Origin: Auanema rhodensis | Lineage: Eukaryota; Animalia; Nematoda | Assembly (NCBI GenBank): GCA_964057225.1 | Contig: OZ059896.1 | Span: 5,890,001 to 5,954,000 of the forward strand | Reading direction: 5' to 3' | DNA length: 64,000 nucleotides | In this document: positions 3,201 to 64,000 of the stretch, piece after piece | Numbering within the stretch: position 1 is the first letter of the stretch | Layout of the letters: each line of letters opens with the position of its first letter | Notes under the pieces: model-generated | What the model was told of the DNA's origin: nothing | Database searches by the model: none | The model's input: only the letters and a program-made list of their open reading frames with translations | Made by a program: the position numbers and the translations under genes

Positions 3201-5189
3201 TTTCAAAATAATTTAGCAAAAAGTAGATGTTTTTAGATTTCTTTTTTCAAGGCAAAAACGATGGACAATGTTATTCAACGAAAAAATTAATTCTTCAGGG
3301 TGAAAATCGAGGATATAAGTGTGAACTTATATCAGTTGATATCTCGGTGCATTTTTAAGCTAGCGCAAATCTGATAACACAGATCGACGCAGCTTAAAAA
3401 TCCGCATCGAATGCACTATATTCCATTGAGAAAAGCTAAATACAAAAATTAGTTATGATCGTTAGAAAAATGATGCATTAGTGTATGTTGAGTTTCCATG
3501 TACACTCAACATTGCTTCCAAAAACATTTTGACAAAAATTTTTTCGAAAAATTTCAAAATAATTTAGCAAAAAGTAGATGTTTTTAGATTCCTTTTTTCA
3601 AGGCAAAAACGATGGACAATGTTATTCAACGAAAAAATTAATTCTTCAGGGTGAAAATCGAGGATATAAGTGTGAACTTATATCAGTTGATATCTCGGTG
3701 CATTTTTAAGCTAGCGCAAATCTGATAACACAGATCGACGCAGCTTAAAAATCCGCATCGAATGCACTATATTCCATTGAGAAAAGCTAAATACAAAAAT
3801 TAGTTATGATCGTTAGAAAAATGATGCATTAGTGTATGTTGAGTTTCCATGTACACTCAACATTGCTTCCAAAAACATTTTGACAAAAATTTTTTCGAAA
3901 AATTTCCAAATAATTTAGCAAAAAGTAGATGTTTTTAGATTCCTTTTTTCAAGGCAAAAACGATGGACAATGTTATTCAACGAAAAAATTAATTCTTCAG
4001 GGTGAAAATCGAGGATATAAGTGTGAACTTATATCAGTTGATATCTCGGTGCATTTTTAAGCTAGCGCAAATCTGATAACACAGATCGACGCAGCTTAAA
4101 AATCCGCATCGAATGCACTATATTCCATTGAGAAAAGCTAAATACAAAAATTAGTTATGATCGTTAGAAAAATGATGCATTAGTGTATGTTGAGTTTCCA
4201 TGTACACTCAACATTGCTTCCAAAAACATTTTGACAAAAATTTTTTCGAAAAATTTCAAAATAATTTAGCAAAAAGTAGATGTTTTTAGATTCCTTTTTT
4301 CAAGGCAAAAACGATGGACAATGTTATTCAACGAAAAAATTGATTCTTCAAGGTGAAAATCGAGGATATAGGTGTGAACTTATATCAGTTGATATCTCGG
4401 TGCATTGTCAAGCTAGCGCAAATCTGATAGTACAGATCGACGCAGCTTAAAAATCCGCATCGAATGCACTATACTACATTGAGAAAAGCTAAATACAAAA
4501 ATTAGTTATGATCGTTTGAAAAATGATGCATTAGTGTATGTTGAGTTTCCATGTACACTCAACATTGCTTCCAAAAACATTTTGACAAAAATTTTTTCGA
4601 AAAATTTCAAAATAATTTAGTAAAAAGTAGATGTTTTTAGATTCCTTTTTTCAAGGCAAAAACGATAGACAATGTTATTCAACGAAAAAATTAATTCTTC
4701 AGGGTGAAAATCGAGGATATAAGTGTGAACTTATATCAGTTGATATCTCGGTGCATTTTTAAGCTAGCGCAAATCTGATAACACAGATCGACGCAGCTTA
4801 AAAATCCGCATTGAATGCACTATACTACATTGAGAAACGCTTAATACAAAAATTAGTTATGATCGTTTGAAAAATGATGCATTAGTGTATGTTGAGTTTC
4901 CATGTACACTCAAAATTGCTTCCAAAAACATTTTGACAAAAATTTTTTCGAAAAATTTCAGAATAATTTAGCAAAAAGTAGATGTTTTTAGATTCCTTTT
5001 TTCAAGGCAAAAACGATGGACAATGTCATTCAACGAAAAAATTAATTCTTCAGGGTGAAAATCGAGGATATAGGTGTGAACTTATATCAGTTGATATCTC
5101 GGTGCATTTTTAAGCTAGCGCAAATCTGATAACACAGATCGACGCAGCTTAAAAATCCGCATCGAATGCACTATATTCCATTGAGAAAA

Positions 5190-8100
5190 GCTAAATACAA
5201 AAATTTTTTCGAAAAATTTCAAAATAATTTAGCAAAAAGTAGATGTTTTTAGATTCCTTTTTTCAAGGCAAAAACGATAGACAATGTTATTCAACGAAAA
5301 AATTAATTCTTCAGGGTGAAAATCGAGGATATAAGTGTGAACTTATATCAGTTGATATCTCGGTGCATTTTTAAGCTAGCGCAAATCTGATAACATAGAT
5401 CTACGCAGCTTAAAAATCCGCATCGAATGCACTATACTACATTGAGAAACGCTTAATACAAAAATTAGTTATGATCGTTTGAAAAATGATGCATTAGTGT
5501 ATGTTGAGTTTCCATGTACACTCAAAATTGCTTCCAAAAACATTTTGACAAAAATTTTTTCGAAAAATTTCAGAATAATTTAGCAAAAAGTAGATGTTTT
5601 TAGATTCCTTTTTTCAAGGCAAAAACGATGGACAATGTTATTCAACGAAAAAATTGATTCTTCAAGGTGAAAATCGAGGATATAGGTGTGAACTTATATC
5701 AGTTGATATCTCGGTGCATTTTTAAGCTAGCGCAAATCTGATAACACAGATCGACGCAGCTTAAAAATCCGCATCGAATGCACTATACTACATTGAGAAA
5801 AGCTAAATACAAAAATTAGTTATGATCGTTTGAAAAATGATGCATTAGTGTATGTTGAGTTTCCATGTACACTCAAAATTGCTTCCAAAAACATTTTGAC
5901 AAAAATTTTTTCGAAAAATTTCAGAATAATTTAGCAAAAAGTAGATGTTTTTAGATTCCTTTTTTCAAGGCAAAAACGATGGACAATGTTATTCAACGAA
6001 AAAATTAATTCTTCAGGGTGAAAATCGAGGATATAGGTGTGAACTTATATCAGTTGATTTCTCGGTGCATTTTCAAGCTAGCGCAAATCTGATAGTACAG
6101 ATCGACGCAGCTTAAAAATCCGCATCGAATGCACTATACTACATTGAGAAACGCTTAATACAAAAATTAGTTATGATCGTTTGAAAAATGATGCATTAGT
6201 GTATGTTGAGTTTCCATGTACACTCAAAATTGCTTCCAAAAACATTTTGACAAAAATTTTTTCGAAAAATTTCAGAATAATTTAGCAAAAAGTAGATGTT
6301 TTTAGATTCCTTTTTTCAAGGCAAAAACGATGGACAATGTCATTCAACGAAAAAATTAATTCTTCAGGGTGAAAATCGAGGATATAGGTGTGAACTTATA
6401 TCAGTTGATATCTCGGTGCATTTTTAAGCTAGCGCAAATCTGATAACACAGATCGACGCAGCTTAAAAATCCGCATCGAATGCACTATACTACATTGAGA
6501 AAAGCTAAATACAAAAATTAGTTATGATCGTTTGAAAAATGATGCATTAGTGTATGTTGAGTTTCCATGTACACTCAAAATTGCTTCCAAAAACATTTTG
6601 ACAAAAATTTTTTCGAAAAATTTCAGAATAATTTAGCAAAAAGTAGATGTTTTTAGATTCCTTTTTTCAAGGCAAAAACGATGGACAATGTTATTCAACG
6701 AAAAAATTAATTCTTCAGGGTGAAAATCGAGGATATAGGTGTGAACTTATATCAGTTGATTTCTCGGTGCATTTTCAAGCTAGCGCAAATCTGATAGTAC
6801 AGATCGACGCAGCTTAAAAATCCGCATCGAATGCACTATACTACATTGAGAAACGCTTAATACAAAAATTAGTTATGATCGTTTGAAAAATGATGCATTA
6901 GTGTATGTTGAGTTTCCATGTACACTCAAAATTGCTTCCAAAAACATTTTGACAAAAATTTTTTCGAAAAATTTCAGAATAATTTAGCAAAAAGTAGATG
7001 TTTTTAGATTCCTTTTTTCAAGGCAAAAACGATGGACAATGTCATTCAACGAAAAAATTAATTCTTCAGGGTGAAAATCGAGGATATAGGTGTGAACTTA
7101 TATCAGTTGATATCTCGGTGCATTTTTAAGCTAGCGCAAATCTGATAACACAGATCGACGCAGCTTAAAAATCCGCATCGAATGCACTATACTACATTGA
7201 GAAACGCTAAATACAAAAATTTTTTCGAAAAATTTCAAAATAATTTAGCAAAAAGTAGATGTTTTTAGATTCCTTTTTTCAAGGCAAAAACGATAGACAA
7301 TGTTATTCAACGAAAAAATTAATTCTTCAGGGTGAAAATCGAGGATATAAGTGTGAACTTATATCAGTTGATATCTCGGTGCATTTTTAAGCTAGCGCAA
7401 ATCTGATAACATAGATCTACGCAGCTTAAAAATCCGCATCGAATGCACTATACTACATTGAGAAACGCTTAATACAAAAATTAGTTATGATCGTTTGAAA
7501 AATGATGCATTAGTGTATGTTGAGTTTCCATGTACACTCAAAATTGCTTCCAAAAACATTTTGACAAAAATTTTTTCGAAAAATTTCAGAATAATTTAGC
7601 AAAAAGTAGATGTTTTTAGATTCCTTTTTTCAAGGCAAAAACGATGGACAATGTTATTCAACGAAAAAATTGATTCTTCAAGGTGAAAATCGAGGATATA
7701 GGTGTGAACTTATATCAGTTGATATCTCGGTGCATTTTTAAGCTAGCGCAAATCTGATAACACAGATCGACGCAGCTTAAAAATCCGCATCGAATGCACT
7801 ATACTACATTGAGAAAAGCTAAATACAAAAATTAGTTATGATCGTTTGAAAAATGATGCATTAGTGTATGTTGAGTTTCCATGTACACTCAAAATTGCTT
7901 CCAAAAACATTTTGACAAAAATTTTTTCGAAAAATTTCAGAATAATTTAGCAAAAAGTAGATGTTTTTAGATTCCTTTTTTCAAGGCAAAAACGATGGAC
8001 AATGTTATTCAACGAAAAAATTAATTCTTCAGGGTGAAAATCGAGGATATAGGTGTGAACTTATATCAGTTGATTTCTCGGTGCATTTTCAAGCTAGCGC

Positions 8101-57100: not shown

Positions 57101-57990
57101 TCGAGGATATAAGTGTGAACTTATATCAGTTGATATCTCGGTGCATTTTTAAGCTAGCGCAAATCTGATAACACAGATCGACGCAGCTTAAAAATCCGCA
57201 TCGCATGCACTATATTACATTGAGAAAAGCTAAATACAAAAATTAGTTATGATCGTTTGGAAAATGATGCATTAGTGTATGTTGAGTTTCCATGTACACT
57301 CAACATTGCTTCCAAAAACATTTTGACAAAAATTTTTTCGAAAAATTTCAAAATAATTTAGTAAAAAGTAGATGTTTTTAGATTCCTTTTTTCAAGGCAA
57401 AGACGATGGACAATGTTATTCAACGAAAAAATTAATTCTTCAGGGTGAAAATCGAGGATATAAGTGTGAACTTATATCAGTTGATATCTCGGTGCATTTT
57501 TAAGCTAGCGCAAATCTGATAACACAGATCGACGCAGCTTAAAAATCCGCATCGCATGCACTATATTACATTGAGAAAAGCTAAATACAAAAATTAGTTA
57601 TGATCGTTTGGAAAATGATGCATTAGTGTATGTTGAGTTTCCATGTACACTCAAAATTGCTTCCAAAAACATTTTGACAAAAATTTTTTCGAAAAATTTC
57701 AAAATAATTTAGTAAAAAGTAGATGTTTTTAGATTCCTTTTTCTAAGGCAAAGACGATGGACAATGTTATTCAACGAAAAAATTAATTCTTCAGGGTGAA
57801 AATCGAGGATATAAGTGTGAACTTATATCAGTTGATATCTCGGTGCATTTTTAAGCTAGCGCAAATCTGATAACACAGATCGACGCAGCTTAAAAATCCG
57901 CATCGCATGCACTATATTACATTGAGAAAAGCTAAATACAAAAATTAGTTATGATCGTTTGGAAAATGATGCATTAGTGTATGTTGAGTT

Positions 57991-60900
57991 TCCATGTACA
58001 CTCAACATTGCTTCCAAAAACATTTTGACAAAAATTTTTTCGAAAAATTTCAAAATAATTTAGCAAAAAATAGATGTTTTTAGATTTCTTTTTTCAAGGC
58101 AAAGACGATGGACAATGTTATTCAACGAAAAAATTAATTCTTTAGGGTGAAAATCGAGGATATAAGTGTGAACTTATATCAGTTGATATCTCGGTGCATT
58201 TTTAAGCTAGCGCAAATCTGATAACACAGATCGACGCAGCTTAAAAATCCGCATCGAATGTACTATACTACATTGAGAAACGCTTAATACAAAAATTAGT
58301 TATGATCGTTTGAAAAATGGTGCATTAGTGTATGTTGAGTTTCCATGTACACTCAACATTGCTTCCAAAAACATTTTGACAAAAATGTTTTCGAAAATAT
58401 TCAAAATAATTTAGCAAAAAGTAGATGTTTTCAAATTCCTTTTTTCAAGGCAAAGACGATGGACAATGTTATTCAACGAAAAAATTAATTCTTCAGGGTG
58501 AAAATCGAGGGTATAAGTGTGAACTTATATCAGTTGATATCTCGGTGCATTTTCAAGCTAGCGCAAATCTGATAACACAGATCGACGCAGCTTAAAAATC
58601 CGCATCGAATGCACTATACTACATTGAGAAACGCTTAATACAAAAATTAGTTATGATCGTTAGAAAAATGATGCATTAGTGTATGTTGAGTTTCCATGTA
58701 CACTCAACATTGCTTCCAAAAACATTTTGACAAAAATTTTTTCGAAAAATTTCAAAATAATTTAGCAAAAAGTAGATGTTTTGAGATTCCTTTTTTCAAG
58801 GCAAAGACGATGGACAATGTTATTCAACGAAAAAATTAATTCTTCAGGGTGAAAATCGAGGATATAAGTGTGAACTTATATCAGTTGATATCTCGGTGCA
58901 TTTTTAAGCTAGCGCAAATCTGATAACACAGATCGACGCAGCTTAAAAATCCGCATCGAATGCACTATACTACATTGAGAAACGCTTAATACAAAAATTA
59001 GTTATGATCGTTTGAAAAATGATGCATTAGTGTATGTTGAGTTTCCATGTACACTCAACATTGCTTCCAAAAACATTTTGACAAAAATTTTTTCGAAAAA
59101 TTTCAAAATAATTTAGCAAAAAGTAGATGTTTTCAGATTCCTTTTTTCAAGGCAAAGACGATGGACAATGTTATTCAACGAAAAAATTAATTCTTCAGGG
59201 TGAAAATCGAGGATATAAGTGTGAACTTATATCAGTTGATATCTCGGTGCATTTTTAAGCTAGCGCAAATCTGATAACACAGATCGACGCAGCTTAAAAA
59301 TCCGCATCGAATGCACTATACCACATTGAGAAACGCTTAATACAAAAATTAGTTATGATCGTTTGAAAAATGATGCATTAGTGTATGTTGAGTTTTCATG
59401 TACACTCAACATTGCTTCCAAAAACATTTTGACAAAAATTTTTTCGAAAAATTTCAAAATAATTTAGCAAAAAGTAGATGTTTTCAGATTCCTTTTTCTA
59501 AGGCAAAGACGATGGACAATGTTATTCAACGAAAAAATTAATTCTTCAAGGTGAAAATCGAGGATATAGGTGTGAACTTATATCAGTTGATATCTCGGTG
59601 CATTTTTAAGCTAGCGCAAATCTGATAACACAGATCGACGCAGCTTAAAAATCCGCATCGAATGCACTATATTCCATTGAGAAAAGCTAAATACAAAAAT
59701 TAGTTATGATCGTTAGAAAAATGATGCATTAGTGTATGTTGAGTTTCCATGTACACTCAACATTGCTTCCAAAAACATTTTGACAAAAATTTTTTCGAAA
59801 AATTTCAAAATAATTTAGTAAAGAGTAGATGTTTTTAGATTCCTTTTTTCAAGGCAAAAACGATAGACAATGTCATTCAACGAAAAAATTGATTCTTCAA
59901 GGTGAAAATCGAGGATATAGGTGTGAACTTATATCAGTTGATATCTCGGTGCATTTTTAAGCTAGCGCAAATCTGATAACACAGATCGACGCAGCTTAAA
60001 AATCCGCATCGAATGCACTATATTCCATTGAGAAAAGCTAAATACAAAAATTAGTTATGATCGTTAGAAAAATGATGCATTAGTGTATGTTGAGTTTCCA
60101 TGTACACTCAACATTGCTTCCAAAAACATTTTGACAAAAATTTTTTCGAAAAATTTCAAAATAATTTAGCAAAAAGTAGATGTTTTTAGATTCCTTTTTT
60201 CAAGGCAAAAACGATGGACAATGTTATTCAACGAAAAAATTGATTCTTCAAGGTGAAAATCGAGGATATAGGTGTGAACTTATATCAGTTGATATCTCGG
60301 TGCATTGTCAAGCTAGCGCAAATCTGATAGTACAGATCGACGCAGCTTAAAAATCCGCATCGAATGCACTATACTACATTGAGAAAAGCTAAATACAAAA
60401 ATTAGTTATGATCGTTTGAAAAATGATGCATTAGTGTATGTTGAGTTTCCATGTACACTCAAAATTGCTTCCAAAAACATTTTGACAAAAATTTTTTCGA
60501 AAAATTTCAAAATAATTTAGTAAAAAGTAGATGTTTTTAGATTCCTTTTTTCAAGGCAAAAACGATAGACAATGTTATTCAACGAAAAAATTAATTCTTC
60601 AGGGTGAAAATCGAGGATATAAGTGTGAACTTATATCAGTTGATATCTCGGTGCATTTTTAAGCTAGCGCAAATCTGATAACACAGATCGACGCAGCTTA
60701 AAAATCCGCATCGCATGCACTATATTACATTGAGAAAAGCTAAATACAAAAATTAGTTATGATCGTTTGAAAAATGATGCATTAGTGTATGTTGAGTTTC
60801 CATGTAAACTCAAAATTGCTTCCAAAAACATTTTGACAAAAATTTTTTCGAAAAATTTGAAAATAATTTAGCAAAAAGTAGATGTTTTTAGATTCCTTTT

Positions 60901-62652
60901 TTCAAGGCAAAAACGATGGACAATGTTATTCAACGAAAAAATTAATTCTTCAGGGTAAAAATCGAGGATATAGGTGTGAAATTATATCAGTTGATATCTC
61001 GGTGCATTTTCAAGCTAGCGCAAATCTGATAGTACAGATCGACGCAGCTTAAAAATCCGCATCGCATGCACTATATTACATTGAGAAAAGCTAAATACAA
61101 AAATTAGTTATGATCGTTTGGAAAATGATGCATTAGTGTATGTTGAGTTTCCATGTACACTCAACATTGCTTCCAAAAACATTTTGACAAAAATTTTTTC
61201 GAAAAATTTCAAAATAATTTAGCAAAAAATAGATGTTTTTAGATTTCTTTTTTCAAGGCAAAGACGATGGACAATGTTATTCAACGAAAAAATTAATTCT
61301 TTAGGGTGAAAATCGAGGATATAAGTGTGAACTTATATCAGTTGATATCTCGGTGCATTTTTAAGCTAGCGCAAATCTGATAACACAGATCGACGCAGCT
61401 TAAAAATCCGCATCGAATGTACTATACTACATTGAGAAACGCTTAATACAAAAATTAGTTATGATCGTTTGAAAAATGGTGCATTAGTGTATGTTGAGTT
61501 TCCATGTACACTCAACATTGCTTCCAAAAACATTTTGACAAAAATTTTTTCGAAAAATTTCAAAATAATTTAGCAAAAAGTAGATGTTTTCAAATTCCTT
61601 TTTTCAAGGCAAAGACGATGGACAATGTTATTCAACGAAAAAATTAATTCTTCAGGGTGAAAATCGAGGGTATAAGTGTGAACTTATATCAGTTGATATC
61701 TCGGTGCATTTTTAAGCTAGCGCAAATCTGATAACACAGATCGACGCAGCTTAAAAATCCGCATCGAATGCACTATACTACATTGAGAAACGCTTAATAC
61801 AAAAATTAGTTATGATCGTTAGAAAAATGATGCATTAGTGTATGTTGAGTTTCCATGTACACTCAACATTGCTTCCAAAAACATTTTGACAAAAATTTTT
61901 TCGAAAAATTTCAAAATAATTTAGCAAAAAGTAGATGTTTTGAGATTCCTTTTTTCAAGGCAAAGACGATGGACAATGTTATTCAACGAAAAAATTAATT
62001 CTTCAGGGTGAAAATCGAGGATATAAGTGTGAACTTATATCAGTTGATATCTCGGTGCATTTTTAAGCTAGCGCAAATCTGATAACACAGATCGACGCAG
62101 CTTAAAAATCCGCATCGAATGCACTATACTACATTGAGAAACGCTTAATACAAAAATTAGTTATGATCGTTTGAAAAATGATGCATTAGTGTATGTTGAG
62201 TTTCCATGTACACTCAACATTGCTTCCAAAAACATTTTGACAAAAATTTTTTCGAAAAATTTCAAAATAATTTAGCAAAAAGTAGATGTTTTCAGATTCC
62301 TTTTTTCAAGGCAAAGACGATGGACAATGTTATTCAACGAAAAAATTAATTCTTCAGGGTGAAAATCGAGGATATAAGTGTGAACTTATATCAGTTGATA
62401 TCTCGGTGCATTTTTAAGCTAGCGCAAATCTGATAACACAGATCGACGCAGCTTAAAAATCCGCATCGAATGCACTATACCACATTGAGAAACGCTTAAT
62501 ACAAAAATTAGTTATGATCGTTTGAAAAATGATGCATTAGTGTATGTTGAGTTTTCATGTACACTCAACATTGCTTCCAAAAACATTTTGACAAAAATTT
62601 TTTCGAAAAATTTCAAAATAATTTAGCAAAAAGTAGATGTTTTCAGATTCCT
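57991..62652 (+). repeat. Diverged ~4-5-monomer block repeated at a 9-monomer (3159 bp) offset; second copy truncated by the array end
   Basis: Markers aaaaaatagatg, tctttaggg, gaatgtact, aaatggtgc, gagggtata, ttgagattcc, ataccacatt and ttttcatg occur in the same order from 57991 and from 61150. Confidence 0.9.
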
Positions 62653-62656
62653 CAGA

Positions 62657-63075
62657 CGCATCTCTTTATCTTTCACGTGAAGCGAGTTACATACCAAGTG
62701 CACATCACGTGTACATTTAATTAGCATAAATTAAAGTTCACGTAAATTTCAAAGTCATGGTTACCATGCACCAATATGAATAAAAATTTGTTTTTAGACT
62801 AATATGGACATGGGGAATCTAATTTTGAAAACCGCATCTTTTTATCTTTCACGTGAAGCGAGTTACATACCAGGTGCACATCACATGTACATTTAATTAG
62901 CATAAATTAAAGTTCACGTAAATTTCAAAGTCATGGTTACCATGCACCAATATGAATAAAAATTTGTTTTTAGACTAATATGGACATGGGGAATCTAATT
63001 TTGAAAACCGCATCTTTTTATTTTCCACGTGAAGCGAGTTACATACCAAGTGCACATCACGTTTATATTTAATTA
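62657..63075 (+). repeat. Second tandem repeat with a 176-bp unit, about 2.4 copies
   Basis: cacgtgaagcgagttacatacc starts at 62674, 62850 and 63026 (period 176). Copies differ at only a few positions (e.g. ccaagtg/ccaggtg, cacgtgtac/cacatgtac/cacgtttat). The sequence is not a copy of the 351-bp monomer. Confidence 0.97.
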
Positions 63076-63281
63076 CTTTAATTTATGCTGATTAAATGTA
63101 CATGTGATGTGCACCTGGTATGTAACTCGCTTCACGTGAAAGATAAAAAGATGCGGTTTTCAAAATTAGATTCCCCATGTCCATATTAGTCTAAAAACAA
63201 ATTTTTATTCATATTGGTGCATGGTAACCATGACTTTGAAATTTACGTGAACTTTAATTTATGCTAATTAAATGTACACGT
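63075..63281 (-). repeat. Inverted 176-bp repeat, about 1.2 copies (207 bp)
   Basis: Reverse complement of 62707-62913 with one mismatch (63090). actttaattt occurs at 63075 and 63251 (period 176). Confidence 0.96.
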
Positions 63282-64000
63282 ATATCCTCGATTTTCACCC
63301 TGAAGAATTAATTTTTTCGTTGAATAACATTGTCCATCGTCTTTGCCTTAAAAAAAGGAATCTGAAAACATCTACTTTTTGCTAAATTATTTTGAAATTT
63401 TTCGAAAAAATTTTTGTCAAAATGTTTTTGGAAGCAATGTTGAGTGTACATGAAAACTCAACATACACTAATGCATCATTTTTCAAACGATCATAACTAA
63501 TTTTTGTATTAAGCGTTTCTCAATGTGGTATAGTGCATTCGATGCGGATTTTTAAGCTGCGTCGATCTGTGTTATCAGATTTGCGCTAGCTTAAAAATGC
63601 ACCGAGATATCAACTGATATAAGTTCACACTTATATCCTCGATTTTCACCCTGAAGAATTAATTTTTTCGTTGAATAACATTGTCCATCGTCTTTGCCTT
63701 GAAAAAAGGAATCTGAAAACATCTACTTTTCGCTAAATTATTTTGAAATTTTTCGAAAAAATTTTTGTCAAAATGTTTTTGGAAGCAATGTTGAGTGTAC
63801 ATGGAAACTCAACATACACTAATGCATCATTTTTCAAACGATCATAACTAAATTTTGTATTGAGCGTTTCTCAATGTAGTATAGTGCATTCGATGCGGAT
63901 TTTTAAGCTGCGTCAATCTGTGTTATCAGATTTGCGCTAGCTTAAAAATGCACCGAGATATCAACTGATATAAGTTCACACTTATATCCTCGATTTTCAC
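63281..64000 (-). repeat. 351-bp satellite in inverted orientation (about 2 monomers, runs off the right window edge)
   Basis: tatatcctcgattttcaccc is the reverse complement of monomer positions 155-174. Monomer position 1 maps to 63454 and 63805 (period 351). Confidence 0.99.

Follow-up and report, generated by a model that had tools for sequence, protein, structure and literature searches.

A patch of about 1.8 kb lying between two large satellite arrays of Auanema rhodense is probably a repair scar without a function of its own, in which two broken ends were each extended by fold-back synthesis and then joined with microhomologies of 0-5 nt. The locus is a known kind of scar and not a special hinge. 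It is located at the right end of the window, that is, the whole 64,000-nt stretch of DNA that was analysed (contig OZ059896.1, positions 5,890,001 to 5,954,000 of the forward strand), and, taken alone, it adds another fold-back scar resolved to the base within satellite DNA. What gives it value is the context, DNA that is discarded from every body cell and in which little selection on structure is to be expected; the block around it is nonetheless rich in strand switches, with a repeated border layout.

The terminal blocks of A. rhodense autosomes consist almost wholly of two autosome-specific repeats, AT-1 and AT-2, and the terminal repeat DNA at the locus is confined to the germline and lost from somatic cells (bioRxiv 10.64898/2026.08.27.747507). 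As judged from a term search, strand switches, fold-backs and border structure are not described for the terminal blocks in the main text of the same paper (bioRxiv 10.64898/2026.08.27.747507). The published AT-1 FISH probe has an exact match at 62689-62716, against a chance expectation of 0 matches, and the 176-bp repeat is therefore AT-1, one of this species' two major terminal repeats on autosomes. The 351-bp repeat is probably the published AT-2, an equation that we infer, and the 351-bp unit showed no homology to a 176-bp dimer (352 nt). Most of the window (1-62652) is occupied by a plus-strand array of the 351-bp satellite, with about 178 monomers (TRF period 351, 97% matches; BLAST map), which extends leftwards to about C4:5,770,216 and reaches a total of about 180 kb (BLAST map, short probes to the left and L098). 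A minus-strand array of the 176-bp repeat, about 210-245 kb in length, begins 420 bp beyond the window end, and the first plus-strand 176-bp unit, from 62657 on, is identical to monomers of this big array. The 176-bp repeat had been described, from the letters of the window, as a short island of a different satellite, a description that does not hold for AT-1 with a neighbouring array of this size. The suggested centromeric angle does not fit DNA that is lost from somatic cells either, and nematodes of this kind are holocentric.

The order proposed in the sequence-only reading, 351(+), 2.4 units of 176(+), 1.2 units of 176(-) and 351(-), was borne out by TRF and an inverted-repeat scan. The 351(+) array is followed by J1 (62653-62656), a 4-nt filler (CAGA) with no microhomology when compared with both sources, and then by 2.38 units of 176(+) at 62657-63075 (TRF; AT-1 probe). 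The loop of the first fold-back comprises 161 nt (62914-63074; inverted-repeat scan) and carries 4-5 unusual substitutions at 63016-63066; at least four differences from the consensus in any 45-nt stretch were observed in only 7 of 382 array monomers. At the turn, J2, whose microhomology is a single A at 63075, the sequence continues as 207 nt (1.2 units) of 176(-) at 63075-63281, an inverted copy of 62707-62913 at 206 of 207 positions, which passes into 351(-) at J3 (63276-63281) through a microhomology of five nucleotides in six (ACAC.T). The 351(-) block, the start of which was called at 63269 or 63282 (TRF and inverted-repeat scan), fills the window to 64000 and ends 361 bp past it, at window-equivalent 64361, giving a total of 1,080 nt or 3.08 monomers. 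J4, again with 1 nt of microhomology, connects this block to a 57-nt piece of 176(+) (64362-64418), which matches the initial 57 nt of the 176(-) array in reverse complement at 56 of 57 positions and is separated from that array by a 7-nt spacer. This last turn, J5, also has 1 nt of microhomology, and the 57-nt arms with their spacer are predicted to fold into a hairpin of -70 kcal/mol (z = -21). All five junctions are located within 1.77 kb and every template within about 4 kb, and J1, J3, J4 and J5 were each found once in the 181-Mb assembly (up to 3 mismatches, J5 by an exact gapped pattern).

The window had also been read as an array inversion forming a nested macro-palindrome, and continuation of the mirrored order past 64 kb had been set beforehand as the test. 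The inverted 351 arm is only 1.08 kb long, against about 180 kb of plus array, and the 176-bp repeat occupies 0.42 kb (+) against 0.21 kb (-). The mirrored order breaks down at 64361, where the 57 nt of 176(+), the flip and the 176(-) array follow, and the inversion is consequently not borne out.

The copy relations within the patch are close. The 375 nt at 63356-63730 (-) are, as had been claimed, identical to the reverse complement of 62278-62652, and they match 59119-59493 equally well; the four private changes previously noted at 63731, 63852, 63862 and 63915 are indeed the next differences beyond this mirror. Two local sources fit the mirrored block equally well because the last 1.6 kb of the 351(+) array (61034-62652) repeats 57875-59493, nine monomers further upstream, almost exactly and in direct orientation; a lag of 3,159 nt gives 4 differences, whereas other lags give 34-62. 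Between the 375-nt block and other monomers, 3 to 11 or more bases are different, and the match is far beyond chance. The mirror copy had initially been argued from shared rare alleles, which both strands do carry: in the window, ATACCACATT is present at 59318 and 62477 (+) and at 63522 (-), GAGTTTTCATG at 59390 and 62549 (+) and at 63449 (-), TTTTCAGATT four times on the plus and twice on the minus strand, and AAAGACG 14 times and three times, respectively. While the first two occur elsewhere in the window only near 59.3-59.4 kb, as stated, they are rare only inside it; with flanking bases, ATACCACATT and GAGTTTTCATG have about 1,008 and 558 occurrences genome-wide, and such numbers rule out these alleles as unique markers. 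The case for a local copy is made instead by the exact 375-nt haplotype and by the local array, which is the best genome-wide match to the mirrored haplotype among the scored candidates, supporting the view that local sequence was copied into the right arm in inverted, fold-back fashion.

Compared with the reverse complement of the plus-array end, the 351(-) block shows 11 differences in 1006 positions overall and none in sub-blocks of 375, 120 and 251 nt, the outermost 251 nt matching the source one monomer out of register. Nine of the differences are clustered in 63731-63930 and 64051-64110. They are not established as new mutations, as the checked variants (four of the nine) exist elsewhere in the genome: the pair 63852/63862 recurs together at four other sites, each of these two is found singly in thousands of monomers, and 337 occurrences were counted for the variant at 63915. 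A stretch on another contig fits the piece with this cluster of differences better than the local source does. The two 351/176 junctions, J1 and J3, are not mirror images, the left arm having 54 nt (the 4-nt filler and 176-bp repeat) between the exact-mirror blocks and the right arm 74 nt of 351-bp repeat.

Given that the inner pieces are near-exact copies of the outer ones, fold-back copying is indicated, and from the observed geometry, copy relations, junction microhomologies and uniqueness of J1, J3, J4 and J5 an order of events may be proposed. The left end would have consisted of the 351(+) array with its 2.4 units of 176(+), the units at 62657-63075 representing the original left end. 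Its 3' end may have folded back over the 161-nt loop to copy 207 nt of 176 and then 1,080 nt of 351 in reverse, and the right end, the putative edge of the 176(-) array, may have folded back over the 7-nt loop to copy 57 nt, after which J4 would have united the two extensions through a single nucleotide of microhomology. Most likely, the left arm later underwent a small repair in which 74 nt of 351 were swapped for the 4-nt filler and 50 nt of 176, and this would account for the lack of mirror symmetry between J1 and J3. This asymmetry weighs against the two-end model in that it demands either a further event or one more template switch, and so does the 351(-) block, which is not a clean colinear copy. 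The two ends could derive from one break, from inversion of the 176 array or from a fusion. With regard to the enzymes, the single-base priming would resemble nematode polymerase-theta end joining, and the kilobase tracts would need a more processive synthesis, similar to break-induced replication.

Fold-back inverted duplications, known from microhomology-mediated end capping as in breakage-fusion-bridge cycles (PMC3834830), share with the locus the mutually copied inverted arms, the short asymmetric spacer (7 nt and 161 nt here), a turn with 1 nt of microhomology and the occurrence of several fold-backs along one chromosome region. J2 and J5 both display copied arms in opposite orientation around a short spacer with little priming homology. 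Unlike those duplications, the locus contains two facing, joined fold-backs, its tracts, of 57 nt and 1.3 kb, are short and not of arm length, and it belongs to a nematode germline-restricted satellite rather than to a tumour amplicon (PMC3834830). In C. elegans, single-base priming and flank-templated reverse-complement inserts have been documented for polymerase theta, with inserts averaging about 10 bp and a minor snap-back class (PMC5068794). Similar to this end-joining pathway (PMC5068794, PMC4490562), the locus shows single-base priming at three of the five junctions, reverse-complement flank templates, a small untemplated filler and errors in the copied tracts. Short microhomology and flank-templated inserts are thus both present, but the inserts, of 57, 207 and 1,080 nt, are of a different size class, and the copied tracts of 57 to 1,287 nt, compared with the documented average of about 10 bp, speak against polymerase theta in the two-end model (PMC5068794).

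A single replicative event by serial template switching (FoSTeS/MMBIR), in which one nascent strand would have moved from 351(+) to 176(+), back, to 351(-), to 176(+) and finally to the 176(-) array, is in our view rather unlikely. Complex rearrangements of this type, reportedly described by Lee et al. in 2007 and Hastings et al. in 2009, resemble the locus in their clustered breakpoints, nearby templates in both orientations and junction microhomology or small insertions. The locus, with five junctions in 1.77 kb, goes beyond the at least two clustered breakpoints with nearby-templated pieces in either orientation that characterise them; its templates within about 4 kb, microhomologies of 0-5 nt and 4-nt filler, as well as substitutions concentrated near the turns, are in line with such an event. 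Nor would a second event be needed to explain the mismatch between J1 and the mirrored J3, as the template could have been the upstream duplicate at 59119-59567, which is intact (2 mismatches in 449 nt). However, a strand copying itself should have re-copied J4 and 351 after the 57 nt, and instead 176(-) continues for more than 200 kb, suggesting that the 57-nt piece is the copy and the array the original. The geometry of this last turn favours a second, independent end over one wandering strand, as in the proposed joining of two fold-backs, with a strand that invaded the array as the less favoured possibility.

An assembly or read artefact, i.e. a chimeric or fold-back long read that joined the 351 array to the 176 array, is improbable. 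Satellite arrays are difficult to assemble, fold-back chimeras do occur in long-read data and each of the four searched junctions is present just once; artefactual fold-backs, however, are simple perfect palindromes, whereas the patch contains five junctions, a filler and non-mirror junctions, its arms diverge at 1/57, 1/207 and 11/1006 positions, and comparable structures are present at two other borders on the contig. A patch of 1.8 kb is well within a single HiFi read.

Very improbable, too, is an organised and selected two-satellite dyad in which the 176-bp repeat acts as a recurring hinge or spacer at 351 inversion points, as put forward in the sequence-only reading. Among the five 351 turns examined, the locus itself included, the 176-bp repeat is present in two (this locus and L097), and the order 351(+), 351(-), 176(+), 176(-) was observed at all three sampled 351(+)-to-176(-) borders of the contig, both in keeping with the proposal. 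Three of the four other switches fetched (C3:~370,206, C4:~20,314,313 and C4:~4,819,623), all plus-to-minus turns of the 351-bp repeat, are nevertheless free of it, and the hinge idea therefore fails as a rule. Both 176-bearing turns are no more than a few kb away from a 176 array, as copying from nearby templates predicts, and the supposed hinge of L097 holds 176 in one orientation only, so that no dyad exists there. The junction positions are different at every locus compared, with none conserved, and the pieces range from 57 nt to 5.2 kb. Tribolium macro-dyads or 'cassettes' (PMC13081366) are similar in that two satellites are intermingled in blocks of several megabases, strand switches are common inside the arrays, and long hairpins are predicted where the orientation turns. 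In that beetle, inversion sites and transition zones are conserved in thousands of copies with 98-99% identity, and sub-arrays tend to be symmetric (PMC13081366). In contrast, J1, J3, J4 and J5 are unique here, the 351 arms are grossly unequal (about 180 kb and 1.08 kb), and A. rhodense eliminates this DNA from body cells, whereas that of Tribolium is (peri)centromeric; neither conserved, repeated junctions nor symmetric sub-arrays were found. A simple two-break inversion of a pre-existing segment without duplication, which would account for the change of orientation and for a reversed part that includes the border of both satellites, has a negligible chance of being correct, because near-exact source copies still adjoin the reversed pieces, demonstrating that sequence was duplicated and not merely turned round.

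The layout of the locus recurs on the contig. The three sampled borders consist of a long 351(+), a short 351(-), a short 176(+) and a long 176(-) stretch, and at the two other borders the order is likewise one of outer originals and inner copies. Within the 176-bp repeat, breakpoints concentrate at a single small hairpin (monomer positions 44-63), where the 3' end of a LINE inserts site-specifically as well; at the other small 176 breakpoint cluster (monomer 143-160), no (TAAA)n-tail junction indicative of a second LINE target was found in either orientation. We tentatively suggest, as a possibility, that the multi-megabase, germline-restricted terminal blocks of A. rhodense may grow and reshuffle by repeated fold-back (breakage-fusion-like) repair, giving borders between oppositely oriented 351 and 176 arrays that regularly hold two facing fold-backs (351> <351 176> <176), with the breaks in 176 seeded at the LINE-target hairpin. 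If so, the LINE's own nicking could drive rearrangement of its host satellite, macro-dyad satellite organisation would exist outside Tribolium and outside centromeres, and this would argue that such symmetry arises incidentally from repair and is not a feature of centromeres. Were the pattern to hold genome-wide, it would show how huge eliminated repeat blocks grow and rearrange, and would provide a non-centromeric control for the claim that beetle satellite macro-dyads are functional.

Between the locus and the one 208 kb upstream, the junction phases differ and the 351(-) blocks differ by about 3.4%. With regard to common descent of these two loci, it may be observed that in periodic arrays any junction is derivable from any other by deletion. 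Plain fold-backs whose arms span at least 1.5-1.8 kb and are 99-100% identical are present elsewhere in the assembly, in favour of the two-end fold-back model.

The layout of the locus was agreed by TRF, an inverted-repeat scan and a BLAST map, which bore out the order 351(+), 176(+), 176(-), 351(-) given by the sequence-only reading (351 and 176 being the 351-bp and 176-bp satellite repeats, with their orientation in brackets). About 178 monomers of 351(+) (window 1-62652) are followed by 2.38 units of 176(+) (62657-63075), 1.18 units of 176(-) (63075-63281) and 1,080 nt, or 3.08 monomers, of 351(-) (63282 to window-equivalent 64361, in window numbering continued past 64000). Taking in 200 kb right of the window for extension of the arms revealed that the mirrored 351(-) arm stops there and gives way to 57 nt of 176(+) (window-equivalent 64362-64418), beyond which 176(-) starts after a 7-nt spacer. 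The locus is thus not the proposed array inversion, nor a nested macro-palindrome, but a 1.77-kb patchwork where a ~180-kb 351(+) array and a ~210-245-kb 176(-) array meet. Probes left of the window traced the former to about C4:5,770,216 (C4, contig OZ059896.1), and the latter is unbroken to at least C4:6,160,400 except for one 5.1-kb retrotransposon; short probes placed the start of non-satellite DNA between C4:6.16 and 6.20 Mb, a point presumably close to where elimination begins or ends. The window spans C4:5,890,001-5,954,000 of an assembly of 180,911,798 bases in 112 contigs; a new A. rhodense germline assembly is reported at 180.9 Mb (bioRxiv 10.64898/2026.08.27.747507). Because the published FISH probe for the autosomal terminal repeat AT-1 matches window 62689-62716 exactly, the 176-bp repeat was taken as AT-1, and the 351-bp repeat would, by inference, be AT-2.

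Five junctions delimit the pieces. J1, from 351(+) to 176(+), carries a 4-nt filler (CAGA) and no microhomology, while J3, from 176(-) to 351(-), shows microhomology at 5 of 6 nt (ACAC.T). A single nucleotide is shared at J2, where the 176-bp repeat turns, at J4 (351(-) to 176(+)) and at J5, the second 176 turn, with its 7-nt spacer. J1 does not mirror J3: what separates the exact blocks is, on the left arm, 54 nt made up of the filler and 176-bp repeat and, on the right arm, 74 nt of 351-bp repeat.

Comparison of the pieces revealed that the inner ones are copies and the outer arrays originals. The 176(-) piece matches the reverse complement of 62707-62913 at 206 of 207 positions, one unit out of register with its source, leaving a 161-nt loop; the 4-5 unusual substitutions in this first fold-back's loop are weak evidence. 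The 57-nt 176(+) piece agrees at 56 positions with the opening 57 nt of the 176(-) array in reverse complement, the two forming a predicted hairpin (-70 kcal/mol, z = -21). The short piece must be the copy: were the array the copy, a mirror of J4 followed by 351-bp repeat would come next in it, and neither does. The 351(-) block differs from the plus-array end at 11 unevenly spread sites in 1,006 nt, with exact sub-blocks of 375, 120 and 251 nt, the outermost one monomer out of register. As the sequence-only reading had claimed, 63356-63730 mirrors 62278-62652 exactly, and the next differences lie at 63731, 63852, 63862 and 63915. Nine differences are grouped in 63731-63930 and 64051-64110. 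Four of these clustered variants were checked genome-wide: the 63852/63862 pair occurs together at four other sites and each member singly in thousands of monomers, the 63915 variant occurs 337 times, and another contig holds a stretch closer than the local source to the piece carrying the clustered variants. Since they recur elsewhere, these variants may reflect conversion or recurrent change, not new mutation. Among the genome-wide candidates scored, it is the local array that matches the mirrored block best. The alleles described as rare kept their window counts, and their rarity proved local only, ATACCACATT and GAGTTTTCATG with flanking bases occurring ~1,008 and ~558 times genome-wide. 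Marker alleles also appear near 59.3-59.4 kb because the final 1.6 kb of the plus array duplicates a stretch nine monomers upstream; this recent direct duplication (61034-62652 from 57875-59493, 4 differences in 1,619 nt) terminates at the array border.

The simplest account of the patch invokes two DNA ends. The left end, made up of the 351(+) array and 2.4 units of 176(+), would have folded back to copy its own sequence, first 207 nt and then 1,080 nt; the right end, the edge of the 176(-) array, would have folded back and copied 57 nt; and both extensions would have been joined at J4. If the left 351/176 junction once mirrored J3, the run of 176(-), J3 and 351(-) would be a faithful self-copy, and J1 would have been edited by a later small repair. 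The main rival, in which the template switched serially within one event, is difficult to tell apart from the two-end account. An assembly artefact is unlikely given the five junctions, the imperfect arms and the parallels elsewhere on the contig. Like nematode polymerase theta scars, the patch combines single-base priming with flank-templated reverse-complement inserts, although those inserts are roughly 10 bp and the tracts here far longer (PMC5068794). The patch is a fresh instance of an already known kind of repair scar.

Two joined, facing fold-backs would give the border layout that recurs on this contig. Short probes (stretches L037-L076 among them) showed the terminal repeat block at C4:4.4-7.2 Mb to be a mosaic, in which 351 arrays and 176 arrays measure tens to hundreds of kb apiece and the strand switches several times per megabase. 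All three long-351(+)-to-long-176(-) transitions probed there run through short 351(-), short 176(+) and long 176(-): 1.08 kb, 57 nt and ~210-245 kb at the window; 5.2 kb, 59 nt and ~18 kb at C4:5.7457 Mb; and 4.1 kb, ~1.4 kb and ~40 kb at C4:4.8196 Mb. The C4:5.7457-Mb border (L097, C4:5,745,001-5,755,000), 208 kb upstream of the window border, is composite: 351(+), an 11-nt filler, seven units of 176(-), 14.9 of 351(-), TCTA, the 59 nt of 176(+), a turn around a 28-nt spacer and the ~18 kb of 176(-), whose far end meets 351(+) at a clean junction sharing 3 nt of microhomology (L098, C4:5,770,001-5,775,000). At C4:4.81-4.83 Mb (L137-L139, probes L099-L136), 351(+) passes by a direct fold-back turn at ~4,819,623 into 351(-), then 176(+), a turn near 4,825,100 and 176(-), the array being 176(+) again by 4.87 Mb. 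Since junction positions differ at all three borders and the C4:5.7457-Mb 351(-) block has no close mirror among its neighbours, the borders appear to be separate or old events, not one unit copied.

The genome-wide picture comes from the probes of one contig and five 351 (+ to -) turns, the window's own and four others. The turn at C3:~370,206 (L035, C3:368,600-371,900, on another contig) is a clean 351-bp palindrome whose arms, running beyond the stretch examined, measure 1,549 nt or more at ~100% identity around a 51-nt spacer; that at C4:~20,314,313 (L036, C4:20,312,500-20,316,500) has 1,814-nt arms at 99% and a 270-nt loop; and that at C4:~4,819,623 (L137) has 247-nt arms at ~100% and a 131-nt loop. 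None of these three contains the 176-bp repeat, and the turn at C4:~5,745,700 (L097) contains seven units in one orientation only. The 176-bp repeat, proposed as a recurring hinge, is thus present at two of the five turns, and J1, J3, J4 and J5, the junctions searched, each occur once in the assembly. Because each 176-bearing turn has a 176 array no more than a few kb away, copying from a nearby template fits and a dedicated hinge does not. The original observation is confirmed, and its interpretation partly supported.

Breakpoints within the 176-bp monomer are clustered. Seven of 15 176-side edges fall at monomer positions 50-64, a small hairpin (TTTAATT-AGCATA-AATTAAA), compared with ~1.3 expected (15 positions, ~8.5% of the monomer); the rough binomial estimate of ~1e-4 is post hoc, and its paired edges are not independent. 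The 5.1-kb non-LTR retrotransposon inside the 176(-) array (L020:1409-6550, C4:6,045,409-6,050,550, window-equivalent 155409-160550) has two domains, endonuclease/exonuclease/phosphatase and reverse transcriptase, and a (TAAA)n tail. The element's 3' junction lies at monomer position 60, with ~33 nt of target absent on the 5' side, and nine sites genome-wide show the same tail/target junction; we infer that nicking by the element may be linked to satellite breakage. Three 176(+) segment starts within 17 nt (window 62657, L138:646 and L097:7174) may mark a second, weaker cluster at positions 143-160, where a search for a LINE tail junction found none.

Among organised systems the nearest is the 'macro-dyad' or 'cassette' arrangement of Tribolium, whose defining features are inversion and transition sequences conserved across thousands of copies, together with sub-arrays of roughly equal extent on either side; the same source describes satellite macro-dyads as known to date from Tribolium alone (PMC13081366). 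Tests at the present locus found neither conserved, high-copy inversion or transition sequences nor roughly symmetric sub-arrays. The A. rhodense blocks have frequent fold-back turns, are non-centromeric and are eliminated from body cells. The scar itself is modest; the leads of value are the recurrent border layout and the breakpoint hot spot, and a full survey of the A. rhodense blocks is worthwhile.

Within the 351 array, TRF also gave a 261-bp period at window 4936-5466 and 6952-7482; these sites, spaced ~2 kb, are monomer variants with a ~90 bp deletion.
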